Virus record (IMG/VR): IMGVR_UViG_3300033145_003233
Coordinates: 248,001-312,000 of that record
DNA length: 64,000 nucleotides
Strand: one strand, 5' to 3'
The notes beneath the pieces were generated by a model. It saw only the letters and a program-made list of their open reading frames with translations, made no database searches and was not told the origin of the DNA. The position numbers and the translations under genes are program-made. Below, piece after piece: positions 1,552 through 9,085 of this stretch. Position 1 is the stretch's first letter, and each line of letters opens with the position of its first letter.

Positions 1552-2637
1552 TTAAAACCACTTTTTGTAGATATTAGCATAAGTCCCATTCTCATAAAGA
1601 GTTAGAATAATCTTATCTATAGGACGTTTTAATTCACTTCCCTTAGATAGAACAAATCCATAGTATTGTTCATCAAACATACCGCCCGCCATAACAACCT
1701 TATCGGGATTGTCTTTTACATAGTTTAAGAGGATAGGATAGTCATAGACAACAGCATCTCCTCTTTCAAGCAGCAGATTATCACAGGCACTACTAATACT
1801 ATCAACTGTTTTAACTTTTGCTCCTAATTCTTTCACATATCCAACACTTGTTGTCCCTTTTTGAGTTAAGACAATTTTGCCTTTTAAATCGTCAGGGCTT
1901 TGAATATCTCCAGCTATCTTTTCCGTTGTATAATCAGCAGACAAAAGAGCAGTAAAATTACAAAAAGCCATAATCCCGCAAAAGATAAGTGCTATTGTTA
2001 TTATTTTTGTTATCCATTTCTTGGGAGTATAATCTCCATATCCAACTGTTGAGCAGGTAACAACACAGAAATAGATAGCTTCAAAAATCCCTGGGATATA
2101 TTTATTATTAATACCCTCGTCTTTCCCTCTTTCGGCAATCCATATTATATGAGAGAAGAGAAGTATAAAGAATATAAAAATACCTATAGGTCTAGACAAG
2201 GCCTCATAAAGAATAGCTCCTCTTGCAATAAAGCCACTACTGGCTTGGTTTTTCAAGACCATAATACCCAAACCAGAGTTCATAGTGGGAACAGAGAAAT
2301 CTGCCCATTCCATTCTAGCAGAACGGATTGTAAGACCTGAGCAACCCACATCTGCATTGCCATTCTTGATATTAGTTTCTATTTCATCCCATGGAACAGC
2401 ATTAAATTTCCAACTTGCAATAAGCCCTTGGGAAACCAATTCTTTTCCTATGGCATTCCATAGTTCTATTTCAAAACCTGAAATTTCTTTGGGGCCATAT
2501 TCGTTATCAGTATTAACAATTACACAGGGGGGCATATCTGAAACATAAACTTGCAAAGGCTTAAAAAAATCGTCCTGTGCCGAAACTATTTGACAACCAA
2601 CAAATAAAACCAACAAAATTACCAACGTTTTCTTCAT
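1552..2637 (-). CDS. GluR0-type ligand-gated potassium channel (SBP family 3 domain split by a two-TM K+ pore)
   Basis: Signal peptide; S1 lobe with SGLTIRSAR; TM helix; pore TCSTVGYGD (K+ filter TVGYG); TM helix; S2 lobe with GTTS, YDYP, EQYYGF, GTYANIYKKWF. Confidence 0.9.
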   Translation of the reverse strand: MKKTLVILLVLFVGCQIVSAQDDFFKPLQVYVSDMPPCVIVNTDNEYGPKEISGFEIELWNAIGKELVSQGLIASWKFNAVPWDEIETNIKNGNADVGCSGLTIRSARMEWADFSVPTMNSGLGIMVLKNQASSGFIARGAILYEALSRPIGIFIFFILLFSHIIWIAERGKDEGINNKYIPGIFEAIYFCVVTCSTVGYGDYTPKKWITKIITIALIFCGIMAFCNFTALLSADYTTEKIAGDIQSPDDLKGKIVLTQKGTTSVGYVKELGAKVKTVDSISSACDNLLLERGDAVVYDYPILLNYVKDNPDKVVMAGGMFDEQYYGFVLSKGSELKRPIDKIILTLYENGTYANIYKKWF

Positions 2638-2659
2638 AGTTTTGTCTCCTAAAAATTAA

Positions 2660-2688
2660 AGAGAGAGAGGATATTATCCCCTCTCTCC
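2660..2688 (-). terminator. Hairpin/terminator between pspA and the channel gene
   Basis: Minus strand GGGAGAGAGGGATAATATCCTCTCTCTCT followed by TTAATTTTT. Confidence 0.55.
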
Positions 2689-3439: not shown

Positions 3440-3892
3440 TTACAAAGACTCAACAAGGTGAACATCAAATAAGTTTTTCGCCGTTAAGAGCGCCGCATTT
3501 AAGCTCCTCATAGAAGCAAGAAGCTCATTTTCCGAAATATCCCCAACTGGTATGCTGTCGATTAAAACAACAGGCCACGAAGATCTGTCATCTCCCTCAC
3601 CATCAATGTCAGTTAAGACACTGAAGGCATACGGAAGTGTTTGAGAATTCATGTCCAGAAGACCAAGAAAAAAATCCTCTTGCATCTCAGTATCGACCTT
3701 CGCTATCAACTGACCCCAAGTTGCGATTTCACAACTGATAGTCAGATTGGTATTATCCATCAGGATAACACAAGGGAAAGGGGCAGTGTCACTCCCCATG
3801 GGAACAGCAACGCTATTCTCGTTAAGCTTGGGAGAAAAACCCTGAGCCTCAAGAGTGCGTTCTACGTCAACTAATGTCTTAATATCGTTCAT
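3440..3892 (-). CDS. YjfI (DUF2170)-like protein
   Basis: Size, LLDMNSQTLPYAFS motif and adjacency to PspA as in yjfI-yjfJ. Confidence 0.55.
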   Translation of the reverse strand: MNDIKTLVDVERTLEAQGFSPKLNENSVAVPMGSDTAPFPCVILMDNTNLTISCEIATWGQLIAKVDTEMQEDFFLGLLDMNSQTLPYAFSVLTDIDGEGDDRSSWPVVLIDSIPVGDISENELLASMRSLNAALLTAKNLFDVHLVESL

Positions 3893-3924
3893 CCTACTTG
3901 CTCCTAAAAATTAATTTTAATTGT

Positions 3925-4653
3925 TTACTTCCACAACTTTACATCATTTATATTGACTTTGCATCCTTGAAGAAAAGTTATAAAACTATTTTCTTCATCA
4001 ACATCAATACCTTCGGTAATCTCTGTTTCTATTTCCACATCACCGTATGCGTCCAGCTCAAGAGACTCTTCCTCATCTCTCCATTCTTGAACGTTGTTAA
4101 ATTCAAGAGTAAGTGATTCGGGATTCTCACAGTCAGATTTGGTTTCATATTCCACCACAGTTGCAAATGATTTTTCCCCATCTTCCATGCACAGACCATA
4201 TCTAGGCCCTTCAGTTACATAAACAATATCCTCATCCTGACCATCATCATTCTGGAATATTTTTTGGGAAAAAACAAGAGAAGGAAGTTCGCAATTTTCA
4301 AAGTCTGCTTTTTCAAAGACCCAATCGCTGCCACTATCCAACATATCAGCACGATTACCTTCTTCGAAATCGTCAGGGATATACATAATTTTTAGCTCAA
4401 ACTCATGCTTAATTATCTTTACAATCAAATACCATAAAATATCGCCAAATTCTATATCAAGAATAATCCATTTAATAGGAGCATCTTGACAAGTTATGAC
4501 TCTTCTTCTCTTTATGGTAAAATCAGCACCATTGGCTATATCCTTATGGCCCTCATCCATTAAAAACGATAAAGTCTGCTCATCAGATAGTTGAACTATA
4601 TCATCTATTTTTAATTGCTGCCACTGGGCCACTTTTTCTTTATCTTCTATCAT
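3925..4653 (-). CDS. Acidic hypothetical protein of the PspA operon
   Basis: ATG at 4653 after AAGGAAAAG; co-oriented within the operon. Confidence 0.6.
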   Translation of the reverse strand: MIEDKEKVAQWQQLKIDDIVQLSDEQTLSFLMDEGHKDIANGADFTIKRRRVITCQDAPIKWIILDIEFGDILWYLIVKIIKHEFELKIMYIPDDFEEGNRADMLDSGSDWVFEKADFENCELPSLVFSQKIFQNDDGQDEDIVYVTEGPRYGLCMEDGEKSFATVVEYETKSDCENPESLTLEFNNVQEWRDEEESLELDAYGDVEIETEITEGIDVDEENSFITFLQGCKVNINDVKLWK

Positions 4654-4674
4654 TGCTACTTTTCCTTTAAGATT

Positions 4675-4698
4675 GAGAGAGGGGAAAACCCCTCTCTC
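4675..4698 (-). terminator. Intra-operon hairpin
   Basis: GAGAGAGGGG-AAAA-CCCCTCTCTC inverted repeat. Confidence 0.5.
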
Positions 4699-4724
4699 GC
4701 TCATTTCTCCACAAGGAGACAAAC

Positions 4725-5375
4725 CTATGTAGACTGTTTTCGATTAGCCAAGACAATAGCAACAACGATACCGCCGACCACGAGCAAAGCCACGACTCCT
4801 AAGAGACCGTTATAGTTCCCCGGAGGACGACCGTACACATAGTTGTTGCGAGTCATCAGGGTGTTCATCATCACAGCATCCGACATGGCACTATACATCA
4901 TCCACGTACCAACGTTGTTCATATAACCATATCCACCATAACCAGAATTATAGGAAATGTTAACATTCGTATTCCCTACTCTCGTTGTTTGGGGGATATG
5001 ACTTGGACGGGAAGCTGGCTGTTTGGTATACTTAGAAGTATACTTAGCTGAGTTCTTACTCTTGAACGCGGCTGTCGCTTCAGACTTGCTCTTGAATGCC
5101 GTTCCATTCTTTTTAGCTGTCTCGAATGACTTTTTTGAAACAGCACTTCTTTTTGGAGCAGTTTTAGCACGACCTGTTGATGCTTTCCTCTTCGTCTGAG
5201 TTTTCGCCCTGTTGCTACTCCTATTACTACTTTTATTACTACTCCTGGCGCCACTTCTGCTGCCACCTCTGCTGCCTCCACCTCTACTGCCTCCTCTTGC
5301 AAAAACATCACTCATGCTTGCAAGAAGGAAGATTGCTGCCACCGACAGCACTACCAACCATCTAAATTTCTTCAT
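4725..5375 (-). CDS. Secreted/membrane-anchored protein with an RGG/Ser/Lys-rich region and C-terminal TM helix
   Basis: Signal peptide MKKFRWLVVLSVAAIFLLASMSDVFA, RGGSRGGGSRGGSRSG repeat, C-terminal LLGVVALLVVGGIVVAIVLA; SD AAGGAG. Confidence 0.7.
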   Translation of the reverse strand: MKKFRWLVVLSVAAIFLLASMSDVFARGGSRGGGSRGGSRSGARSSNKSSNRSSNRAKTQTKRKASTGRAKTAPKRSAVSKKSFETAKKNGTAFKSKSEATAAFKSKNSAKYTSKYTKQPASRPSHIPQTTRVGNTNVNISYNSGYGGYGYMNNVGTWMMYSAMSDAVMMNTLMTRNNYVYGRPPGNYNGLLGVVALLVVGGIVVAIVLANRKQST

Positions 5376-5428
5376 CGTTTGTCTCCTTTCAAGAAACATT
5401 ACAAAAATCATTTAAGATTTAAAAATGC

Positions 5429-5456
5429 ATTATACAAAATATACTTTCACTTTCAA
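5429..5456 (-). promoter_or_regulatory. Class 1 promoter driving the PspA/channel operon
   Basis: TTGAAA-GTGAAAGTATATTTTG-TATAAT. Confidence 0.75.
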
Positions 5457-5523
5457 GCATTAAAAAAAATATTTATAACTGTCTATTATAAAACAAGTTA
5501 TAAAAAGCTCATTTTTCACAACT

Positions 5524-5781
5524 TCACTTATCTTTCTTAGCTGGCCCCTTTTTTACCTCTCCTTTTCCCACTTTTTTATCTAATTCGTAGTTCTTATCTT
5601 TTCTATAATCAGTAGCATAAAAGCCACTTCCCTTAAAAATTATACCCGATCCTGCTCCAATTAAACGATTAAGTTTTAATTTCTTGCATTTAGGGCATTT
5701 CTTAAGAACACGACTAGACATCTTTTGAAATTTCTCGAATTGATGATTACAAGCAGAGCATAAATAATCATAAGTAGGAAT
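5524..5781 (-). CDS. FmdB-family zinc ribbon protein with non-canonical ATT start
   Basis: IPTYDYLCSACNHQFEKFQKMSSRVLKKCPKC...GAGSGIIFKGSGFYATDYR; SD AAGGAG 7 nt upstream of ATT at 5781. Confidence 0.8.
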   Translation of the reverse strand: MPTYDYLCSACNHQFEKFQKMSSRVLKKCPKCKKLKLNRLIGAGSGIIFKGSGFYATDYRKDKNYELDKKVGKGEVKKGPAKKDK

Positions 5782-5785
5782 TTTC

Positions 5786-6589
5786 TTGCTCCTTAATAAA
5801 GGTTTTTTACAATTTATTCATAATATAGAATATGTGGAAACAGTAATAAAAGAAAAAATCATTAATATCTATAAAAACAATTTCAACAAAACAATTGTAG
5901 ATATTGCTTCTCAATTTAAAGTTAGCCGTAATACTATTTATAGAGCATTGGAAAAAAATAGAATAGATAAAAATCTGTTAAAATTTGACCATAATTTTTT
6001 CTCTTCCATTAATTCCGAAAAAAGCGCCTACTGGCTCGGTTTTATATTCGCAGATGGGTGCATATGTGATTCACACGGAACTACAAAATCCCTAAATATC
6101 CATTTATCTACTAAAGACGAATTACATCTTAAAGCATTTCAAAAAGATATTAAATCCAGATTAAAAATACATCTTGTAAAAGAAAAAGACAAAAACTCGG
6201 TTTATTGCAGATATTATTCTAATAAATTATGCGAAGATCTTATAAGACTAGGCTGCGTGCCAAGAAAAAGCACTATTTTGAATTTTCCCGACATCCCACC
6301 GCTTCTGCATCGACATTTTATCAGAGGATATATAGATGGAGATGGATGTATTTGTCTAAGAAAAAATGGCCTAAGAAAAAATTTACAGATAGGAATTATA
6401 GGAACTGAGCAGTTTTTATCTTCTCTACAATCTTTATTTTTCAAAGAGCTAAATATTAATCACAAAAAACTTCAGAATAAGGGCAGAGTTAAAAGTTTAA
6501 CCATTAATGGTAACAAGCAATGCCTCCGATTAATAAAATGGCTATATCAAGATAGCACAATATATCTTGCTAGGAAGTGCATAATATAA
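5786..6589 (+). mobile_element. Free-standing LAGLIDADG homing endonuclease with N-terminal HTH
   Basis: AYWLGFIFADGCI and RHFIRGYIDGDGCI motifs; opposite strand to its neighbours; real start may be GTG at 5834. Confidence 0.9.
5800..5824 (+). promoter_or_regulatory. Class 2 (sigmaH-like) promoter
   Basis: AGGT-N17-TAAT upstream of the LAGLIDADG coding region. Confidence 0.5.
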
Positions 6590-6603
6590 TTCATAGGTCG
6601 GCA

Positions 6604-7182
6604 TTACTCTATTTTTCCTATTTTCGAATAATAGTATAGAATTCCCCAAGCCTTAGCTCCAACCTTCTTCCCCGAACCTAATAGCTTATTAATGTCGTCT
6701 ATATCATAAAACAACACTTCTATATCCTCACTATCTTCTTGATCAGTATAACTAATTTCTCCCGCTGCCTTTGCAAACACAATAACACATGATTCATCAC
6801 AAATACCAGGAGAAGAATAAATAGGGCAACTTACATCTGTAATTTCTGTAATATCTAGACCAGTCTCTTCCTTCAATTCTTTAATAGCGGTTTCTGCTAT
6901 ATCTTGCCCCTCTTCTATCAATCCAGCAGGGAATCCATATTCACATCCTCCAATAGCGACTCTATACTCTTTTGTAATAACAAGTCTTCTACCAGTAGGA
7001 GTATCTACAATAGGAGCAATAACAACAGCATCAACACTTGGATCTGCAATAGGATGTTCTTTTCTGGAAACAAAAGTCCATTCTACAGTATTTAATTTAG
7101 CATTAATATATTTCACAAAAAATAAATTAATCCATTTGTTATCTGTAAGTTTTTTAAGTTGTAATATTTTTCTCAAGTTCAT
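6604..7182 (-). CDS. NUDIX hydrolase (ADP-ribose pyrophosphatase-like)
   Basis: Nudix box PAGLIEEGQDIAETAIKELKEETGL; YSSPG. Confidence 0.9.
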   Translation of the reverse strand: MNLRKILQLKKLTDNKWINLFFVKYINAKLNTVEWTFVSRKEHPIADPSVDAVVIAPIVDTPTGRRLVITKEYRVAIGGCEYGFPAGLIEEGQDIAETAIKELKEETGLDITEITDVSCPIYSSPGICDESCVIVFAKAAGEISYTDQEDSEDIEVLFYDIDDINKLLGSGKKVGAKAWGILYYYSKIGKIE

Positions 7183-8489
7183 CTGTCCATTTCTTCCAAT
7201 AACTTTTTATAACGATTTCTATAGTTAGCACTCAAGTGATCTATCTTTTCAGATAACATTATCTCAAATAATTCATCTGGATCAAAATTAGCTAACTTGG
7301 CAAGACCAAGAATCAAGAGAGGAGTAGGAGTGTAGCTCCCTCCTTCGCTTCTTGCCACATTAGAAACACTCACATTTACCTCCTTACATAAAGATAGCTG
7401 ACTTTTCCCTATTGAGGTTCTTTTATTTTTTATATAAGCAGACGTTTTTTTAAAATTCCATCCTATTCCCTTAGAAGTTCCCTCATCAAAACGGAAGGCC
7501 CACCCTCTATTATCTTTCAATTCTCCCTTTTTATATTTATCAAATACTATTCTATGTTTATAATCATACCATCTTACCCTATCAGATAAAACCATCTCAT
7601 AAATAGGCTCTAAATTTAAAAATAAAGAATTACATAATCTATATATCATCATTTGGCCAGGCAGATTCCATGAAAGACAGATACTCCTTATAAGATGAGG
7701 ATGAACTCCTATCAACTTTGACTGCTCTCCGTATGTTAATCCTCGAATTGCTTCTAAGTAAAATACAGAAAAATCAGATTGAAATTCTTCATCCCTCAAT
7801 AATACTGTGTGAGGACAAGAAACATTATCTCTATGATAAGATTTAATTAATTTTATAACTTCATCTTTATCATCTTGCTTCTCCCTGTAATACTCCATAT
7901 ATTCAGCCACTTTTTTTTCTGCATGAGCCACATAGCATTTTATCTTCTCTAATAATTGCATATGAAAGAGATCATATGGGTTAATCTTCAAACATTTAGA
8001 TATAGCAAAAATCTTCTTTAAAGGTAAACTTTTTCTACCAGCTTCTATAGATAAAAGTTCCCTCCTCTCCATCCCCATTATCTTGAGAAAATTTATTATA
8101 GTCAGAGATTGCTCAACTCTCCTATTATGTATATATCTCCCAGTTTTTTTTAATTTTAATGAAACTTTACCTCGAGAATTAGAAGTAGAAAAAAAGATAC
8201 AATTATAAGGGTTCTTGCTAAAATCTCCCTTCTTTTTATAATCCTTATAAAAAAGAACATTCTCTTTAGCAAATCTTTTAGACCATTCTATTATAATAGA
8301 TTGGCAAAAAGATGGCGGATCAATACCCATAGCTTGTGCTATGTGAAAAGCCTTATGAATAGAAGGGATGATCTCTCCTTTTTCTGTCCTCAATATAACA
8401 TCAGGATGAACTCCAGATATCTTAAAAAGATCTTTAAGTGTCCATCCCTTAGAGATTCTTTGAGAACGTACTAGTTCGGCTACATTCAT
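7179..8489 (-). CDS. Transcriptional regulator with multiple XRE-type HTH repeats
   Basis: Repeated XRE-like segments (VRSQRISKGWTLKDL..., IHNRRVEQSLT..., IKNKRTSIGKSQLSL...E.G). Confidence 0.7.
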   Translation of the reverse strand: MNVAELVRSQRISKGWTLKDLFKISGVHPDVILRTEKGEIIPSIHKAFHIAQAMGIDPPSFCQSIIIEWSKRFAKENVLFYKDYKKKGDFSKNPYNCIFFSTSNSRGKVSLKLKKTGRYIHNRRVEQSLTIINFLKIMGMERRELLSIEAGRKSLPLKKIFAISKCLKINPYDLFHMQLLEKIKCYVAHAEKKVAEYMEYYREKQDDKDEVIKLIKSYHRDNVSCPHTVLLRDEEFQSDFSVFYLEAIRGLTYGEQSKLIGVHPHLIRSICLSWNLPGQMMIYRLCNSLFLNLEPIYEMVLSDRVRWYDYKHRIVFDKYKKGELKDNRGWAFRFDEGTSKGIGWNFKKTSAYIKNKRTSIGKSQLSLCKEVNVSVSNVARSEGGSYTPTPLLILGLAKLANFDPDELFEIMLSEKIDHLSANYRNRYKKLLEEMDR

Positions 8490-9085
8490 CTGCTAACAAA
8501 ATCCTCAACAACATATCCATTTTCATCTACATAGTTTTTAATTCTTCCCGCCATGTTATTAATAATTTGTCTAATTCTCTCTCTACTATAATCCAATACA
8601 TCTGCTATTTCAACCATTTCCATTCGTTGCTCATAATAATAATATTTGATTTGCTCTTCTAATGGGCTTAATTCAATTCTGTCAAACAAAAACTCTAAAT
8701 CTCCCCACTCAACAAATGGCTTATATTTCTCTCGTATAGGGCGATAATGGTATCCATATTCTTCTTCGCTTTCTCCAGCAAATTCAAAACCCATTATTTT
8801 AAATCTATCTTCCCACCTACTACGTAAATCTATATAGATAGAGAACCCTGTTCTAAAAGCAAATTTTGCATAGGTAGAAAATTTCACACCCCTAGACGGA
8901 TCATATTTCTCAGCGGCCATACACAAAAACCATATTAAATGACCAGCAACATCATCAATTTCGGGAGGCCTTATTTTTCCGCGATTTAATAACGTTTTTA
9001 TATACCACCATACCAAATTGATATTATCAGCAGCTAGTTGTTTTTGTTCTTCCGTTAAATAATGTTGTCCATAGGGTCTTCCCAT
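8486..9085 (-). CDS. Sigma-70 family RNA polymerase sigma factor
   Basis: DNINLV, KYDPSRGVKFSTYA (region 2); EIADVLDYSRERIRQI (region 4). Confidence 0.85.
   Translation of the reverse strand: MGRPYGQHYLTEEQKQLAADNINLVWWYIKTLLNRGKIRPPEIDDVAGHLIWFLCMAAEKYDPSRGVKFSTYAKFAFRTGFSIYIDLRSRWEDRFKIMGFEFAGESEEEYGYHYRPIREKYKPFVEWGDLEFLFDRIELSPLEEQIKYYYYEQRMEMVEIADVLDYSRERIRQIINNMAGRIKNYVDENGYVVEDFVSR

Follow-up and report, generated by a model that had tools for sequence, protein, structure and literature searches.

A LAGLIDADG homing endonuclease gene within the first codons of a huge-phage FmdB gene is associated with a rewritten gene start

Free-standing homing endonucleases of phages, such as the seg and mob genes of T4 (e.g. 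SegF; Belle, Landthaler and Shub 2002), spread by intron-less homing: the endonuclease gene lies between or at the edge of conserved genes rather than in an intron or intein, related genomes show presence/absence polymorphism at the same site, and spread is presumed to occur by double-strand-break repair with co-conversion of the flanks, with immunity caused by sequence differences in the carrier. The T4 enzymes belong to the GIY-YIG and HNH families and sit in intergenic gaps. In fungal mitochondria, mobile LAGLIDADG ORFs inserted in protein genes carry a foreign gene end (Allomyces atp6; Glomus atp6, atp9, cox2 and nad3; PMC3630166): the 3' end of the gene is duplicated, the native copy is left as an unused remnant that matches close relatives and the working copy travels with the element. 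A third case is nrdA of Aeromonas phage Aeh1, which is reportedly split by mobE (Friedrich et al. 2007): here, an endonuclease was inserted within a phage coding region, new translation signals keep the gene working, and both halves are expressed and reassemble.

We analysed a 64,000-nucleotide stretch (the window) of a 547,943-bp virus record (IMGVR_UViG_3300033145_003233, positions 248,001 to 312,000) with 33.6% G+C and a cluster of 29 tRNA genes. The genome is that of a huge phage. An alternative genetic code was ruled out, as open reading frame statistics and 29 ordinary tRNAs fit table 11. In this window, a LAGLIDADG gene sits 14 bases inside a small zinc-ribbon gene of the FmdB family, and the gene survives on a second copy of its first codons that starts with ATT instead of ATG. 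The parts of the locus are:

6604-7182, minus strand: NUDIX hydrolase gene (Pfam NUDIX, 1.5e-12); its TAA stop (6606-6604) overlaps the orphaned ATG (6604-6602) as TAATG
6590-6604, minus strand: orphaned native 5' end of FmdB, ATG CCG ACC TAT GA(A), encoding MPTYE
6542-6604, minus strand: short leftover frame of 20 codons, from MPTYE to TAG (6544-6542), running antisense into the 3' end of the endonuclease gene and still coupled to the NUDIX stop
5786-6589, plus strand: free-standing LAGLIDADG homing endonuclease gene with an N-terminal HTH, antisense to the host operon; open frame of 267 aa, or 251 aa from the likely GTG start at 5834
5782-5833, minus strand: right junction between the endonuclease start and FmdB, carrying the Shine-Dalgarno sequence AAGGAG (5794-5789)
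5779-5781, minus strand: ATT, the inferred initiation codon of the working FmdB copy
5524-5781, minus strand: FmdB-family zinc-ribbon gene (85 aa, CxxC...CxxC), the functional copy

At the far end of the endonuclease frame, and running four bases beyond it, the minus strand reads AAGGAG and seven further bases, followed by ATT CCT ACT TAT GAT, which opens the FmdB frame. The observation in the preliminary description is correct in every detail, including the three differences between the two copies (G3T, G6T and C9T). The duplication is not caused by chance: the probability of ATG CCN ACN TAY GAN at one fixed site is about 1e-7 from the base composition of the window, and the relaxed pattern ATN CCN A[CT]N TAY GA occurs only six times on both strands of the 548-kb genome, three of which are the two copies here and a paralogous gene start. 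No homology between the copies was found beyond codon 5: a local alignment with two 1-nt insertions appeared to extend the stub to about +26, but the shared run also aligns to the conserved C-terminal coding sequence of the related endonuclease in L092 and the alignment score is reached by 14 of 5116 control windows, and the extension is better explained as the endonuclease's own 3' end. The stub frame also meets a TAA four codons after its TAG, which likewise speaks against an alternative genetic code.

The 85-residue protein has the PxYxY start of FmdB proteins followed by CxxC...CxxC and matches Zn_ribbon_8 (PF09723) over residues 2-41 with an E-value of 2.3e-14; C8, C11, C29 and C32 are invariant in the alignment of homologues and ATT occupies the position of Met1. 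No in-frame ATG, GTG or TTG lies between the upstream stop, 13 codons before, and ATT, and the next ATG would delete the first CxxC of the zinc ribbon. A public annotation of an identical contig also calls the gene at 85 aa, which is the ATT start. In contrast, standard gene callers miss or truncate related genes: in several contigs, among them L003, L420 and L425 (alleles are named by locus number), FmdB was called from an upstream TTG or an internal ATG where the true start position is ATH (ATT, ATC or ATA), and the family is therefore mis-annotated in public collections. A dead gene that lost its start through the insertion is very unlikely, even though there is no canonical start codon: dN/dS is 0.08 against L003 and 0.08-0.14 in four comparisons that pair ATH with ATH or with ATG alleles (the codon alignment with L425 is not included), all four zinc-binding cysteines are invariant and a consensus Shine-Dalgarno sequence sits at ideal spacing.

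The endonuclease gene is single-copy in the genome and hits Pfam LAGLIDADG_3 (PF14528, 2.3e-10, over two stretches) and HTH_7. Both LAGLIDADG motifs are present (YWLGFIFADG and RGYIDGDG) and their acidic residues, D90 and D186, are invariant in 13 homologues. An AlphaFold2 model (pLDDT 88, pTM 0.79) predicts the pseudo-symmetric alpha-beta-beta-alpha-beta-beta-alpha double-domain fold; in a Foldseek search, the best match was I-Tsp061I (1e-9), followed by I-AniI and I-OnuI, and a profile search hit 2dch at 5e-4. Homologues align from GTG 5834, which corresponds to their Met. The window's endonuclease has a GTG or TTG start, no clear Shine-Dalgarno sequence and a C-terminus that is a few residues shorter than in relatives, and it may already be losing activity. 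A conserved inverted repeat (AAGAGTA...TACTCTT) next to a T-run, which looks like a terminator on the endonuclease strand, lies just upstream of the endonuclease start in L007 (about 270-335) and L092 (about 4350-4410); this spacer is absent from the window.

An intron whose splicing joins MPTYE to the body has only the duplicated first codons flanking an endonuclease gene in its favour and is very unlikely: a search with Rfam models at E <= 1 over 4500-8000 matched no group I or group II intron and returned only two sub-threshold snoRNA-like hits elsewhere, the endonuclease stands alone on the opposite strand, and the downstream copy is complete with its own Shine-Dalgarno sequence. Moreover, L003 and L420 carry the ATT gene without any insert to splice, L003 with no upstream exon at all.

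The module of two sigma-like genes, a multi-HTH gene, NUDIX, FmdB and three further genes is syntenic in other large phage-like contigs, with NUDIX proteins 57-64% identical to the one of the window. The window's 7179-9085 region (minus strand) contains the gene of a 436-aa protein with HTH_3-type matches in two separate regions, near residues 8-59 and 360-407, and a sigma-70-like gene, which form a conserved module with NUDIX and FmdB across this huge-phage clade, and the HTH gene varies greatly in length between relatives. GTDB genomes gave only cellular NUDIX relatives at 51% identity or less; a blastn search of phage GenBank and a single-protein scan of viral contigs gave no match. As the preliminary description had proposed, relatives without the endonuclease have NUDIX and FmdB contiguous: L422 reads TAATG CCT CAT, L424 reads TAATG CCT ACA, and in L002, L004 and L005 the stop is directly followed by ATG CCA ACA. 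Thus, there is presence/absence polymorphism at the same site: it is occupied in the window, L009 and L092, scarred in L420 and empty in L422, L424, L003, L002 and L004.

Nine endonuclease-bearing alleles, including the window, abut the first codons of FmdB-type genes, with endonucleases 41-74% identical and in either orientation. In five of them, and in one allele whose endonuclease was deleted, an orphaned native start ends at +9 to +14, which marks the insertion point and, by inference, the cleavage region. Monomeric, double-motif LAGLIDADG enzymes cleave targets of 18-22 bp, and here the target is only inferred from these stub ends. L092 has the stub ATG CCT CAT TAT, an antisense endonuclease and the working start AGGAG-8-ATC CCT CAT TAT; its endonuclease frame (3581-4336, minus strand) is still open over about 250 codons but the codon aligned with the Met of relatives is ATA and the GGAG before it has decayed, indicating a likely early pseudogene. 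L420/L421 have the stub ATG CCA ACT TAT, about 60 nt from the two ends of a deleted endonuclease, and GGAGG-8-ATT CCT ACC. L006 has the stub ATG CCT ACA after a different upstream gene, and an endonuclease, but the contig ends before the working start; in L007 the contig ends before any stub, the endonuclease is present and the working start is ATG CCA AGT, with Ser at codon 3. L008 has the stub ATG CCA ATT TAC, an endonuclease and the restored copy ATG TGT CCA ATT TAC, while L171 has no stub, an endonuclease and an ATC start; these two alleles concern a second PxYxY gene family. The endonuclease is antisense in the window, L092, L006-L008 and L171. It is co-oriented with the target only in L172 (stub ending at TATGA, TTG start), L173 (no clear stub, ATT start) and L174 (stub ending at TATGA, new ATG), where it overlaps the host gene out of frame (around 2150-2240): in L173 and L174 the endonuclease stop is the out-of-frame TGA embedded in TAT GAT, in L172 it overlaps the new TTG start, and in all three the last codons of the endonuclease contain the Shine-Dalgarno sequence for the downstream zinc-ribbon gene.

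NUDIX identities define the host clusters L002/L004/L420, L092/L422, L003/L424 and L090/L091. Each stub carries the wobble bases, and in L092 the unusual His codon, of the empty-site relatives of its own cluster, indicating that the stubs are native. The working copies share ATY CCT, and their right junction is homologous between the window and L420 and, around the Shine-Dalgarno sequence, also in L092, three endonuclease or scar alleles from different host lineages. This fits an element that brings its own start, although the working copy of L092 shares the lineage-specific His3 codon with its stub, which a simple model of donor-borne first codons does not predict. Alternatively, one ancient insertion in the common ancestor may have been inherited vertically, with repeated precise or partial losses and without horizontal transfer of a replacement start. 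In favour of this view, endonuclease divergence (61-63% identity of the window to the others) is similar to host NUDIX divergence (57-63%), the right junction is homologous and L420 shows that loss happens. However, cluster-specific wobble and His3 states are hard to keep in a 12-nt non-coding relic at saturated synonymous divergence, and the left junction falls at different points of the endonuclease 3' end in the window and L092; we consider this explanation unlikely.

Of the eight endonuclease-adjacent alleles whose downstream start lies on the contig, seven have it altered at or next to the start codon (ATT, ATC, TTG, an extra codon or a new ATG) and only one, L007, keeps the canonical ATG-Pro, compared to 133 of 165 endonuclease-free unique alleles (Fisher p = 1.3e-4; alleles are not independent). 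The three wobble differences in the window are not the consistent recoding that the preliminary description had suggested: in L092 the two copies differ only at the third base of the start codon, and the recurrent change is at or next to the start codon. Genome-wide use of ATH starts was ruled out: ATG dominates, and only two genes combine a strong Shine-Dalgarno sequence with an ATH codon and no canonical alternative, both from the PxYxY-start families that this endonuclease lineage targets. The second of these, outside the window at genome position 411,181 (locus L250, about 2425-2682, minus strand; IPIYEFEHPETGEIFE...), starts with ATT after GGGGAG, has no ATG, GTG or TTG anywhere in its frame and has no endonuclease; its ATT is a point difference from a relative's ATG in an otherwise collinear native context, and relatives carry the same endonuclease lineage at this locus (L008, L171) or a plain ATG (L332). 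The genome's 171,686-183,550 region contains a cluster of 27 tRNA genes, three of them with anticodon CAT.

It had been stated beforehand that endonuclease-free relatives already using ATT would refute the proposed interpretation, and taken literally this condition is fulfilled: L003, L363, L380 and L251 use ATT, L090 uses ATA and L425 uses ATC. In L425 (600-860), the NUDIX stop reads TAATTC and is followed by about 250 nt with a small CxxC...CxxC open frame and only then by the ATC-started FmdB, and this may be another rearranged former insertion site. We read the free ATH alleles as after-effects of the endonuclease, because L420 retains both copies and ATT after deletion of the endonuclease ORF and every host cluster holds both ATG and ATH alleles; this reading is inference. 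ATT, ATC and ATA could interconvert neutrally and the number of independent G losses is uncertain, and some ATH alleles (L003, L420, L171, L380, L251) have an in-frame TTG or ATG a few codons upstream. A cause unrelated to the endonuclease, such as a clade-wide regulatory feature with deliberately weak or factor-sensitive initiation next to which the endonuclease merely landed, is not excluded: ATH starts are common in endonuclease-free members of this phage clade, the paralogous gene uses ATT in a native context, and all ATH alleles keep strong Shine-Dalgarno sequences. We regard it as unlikely, since the stubs left by three independent insertions are all ATG, and the TTG, the inserted codon and the new ATG next to endonucleases fit a change of the site better than a weakening of the start. 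Also, a survey dominated by bacterial FmdB genes found 74 ATG, 3 GTG, 1 TTG and 2 ATT, and both ATT alleles lie on low-GC, phage-like contigs; bacterial-type genes thus show 0 ATH in about 78.

The interpretation in the preliminary description, a 5'-end version of intron-less homing in which the element carries a cleavage-resistant duplicate of its target, is partly supported. The sequences themselves establish that a free-standing LAGLIDADG gene has invaded FmdB 12-14 nt after its start codon, that the native start was left behind as a dead stub, that the working gene begins at a second copy of the first codons with its own strong Shine-Dalgarno sequence and an ATT codon, that the same endonuclease lineage sits at the 5' end of FmdB-type genes in eight other alleles with the downstream start nearly always altered, and that the gene remains under purifying selection. 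What we infer, from sequence alone, is initiation at ATT, cleavage, homing and immunity: the endonuclease would cut intact ATG CCN ACN TAY GA... starts in endonuclease-free genomes, and repair would copy the donor's endonuclease together with its replacement start, with the left end joined illegitimately when the donor's upstream flank is not homologous, stranding the recipient's own start. The replacement start would be immune because the site is changed at the start codon, the one position that can change without altering the protein, and a consensus Shine-Dalgarno sequence would compensate for the weak codon; ATH starts in endonuclease-free relatives would be resistance alleles or relics left after the endonuclease decayed. 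We give this explanation a probability of about 0.7.

The locus resembles intron-less homing by the free-standing phage endonucleases, with a gene that lies in no intron or intein and presence/absence polymorphism at the same site. In comparison with T4, a LAGLIDADG enzyme here sits inside the first 14 nt of the target gene, leaves a stranded start and, in this view, comes with a replacement Shine-Dalgarno sequence and start codon. Relative to the fungal mobile ORFs, the arrangement is a mirror image: the 5' end is duplicated, so that the element would have to supply translation initiation signals rather than a stop, the ORF is antisense rather than fused in frame, the duplicate is only 12-14 nt and the host is a phage. 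The association with non-AUG starts sets it apart from both systems. As in Aeh1, the endonuclease is inserted inside a phage coding region with new translation signals, but the upstream piece is a five-codon stub and the whole protein would be made from the downstream copy. Literature searches for a link between FmdB and endonucleases or for start-codon immunity found nothing relevant. Non-AUG start codons are usually explained by regulation, and a selfish endonuclease offers a different, testable cause; the recurrence of the pattern in relatives suggests that the endonuclease drives the loss of ATG. The case also shows how a homing endonuclease can colonise the very first codons of a gene, where no intron or intein could rescue the host, as inferred by bringing its own ribosome-binding site and start. 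The inferred target is short, well-defined and highly conserved, and the enzyme family could be characterised quickly. A more far-reaching reading, which remains tentative and which we consider somewhat less likely than not, is that the third base of the start codon is the immunity determinant in an arms race between one LAGLIDADG lineage and the FmdB-type genes of huge phages: as ATG is the only codon the enzyme could rely on absolutely, escape would go through ATT, ATC, ATA, TTG or an inserted codon, and selfish endonucleases would then be a cause of non-AUG initiation codons in phage genes, including in genomes from which the endonuclease has since vanished.

Downstream of FmdB, at 5429-5456 of the window (minus strand), a near-consensus promoter (TTGAAA-16-TATAAT) lies ahead of the gene of a 216-aa secreted or membrane protein, and a very similar promoter precedes FmdB in L007.
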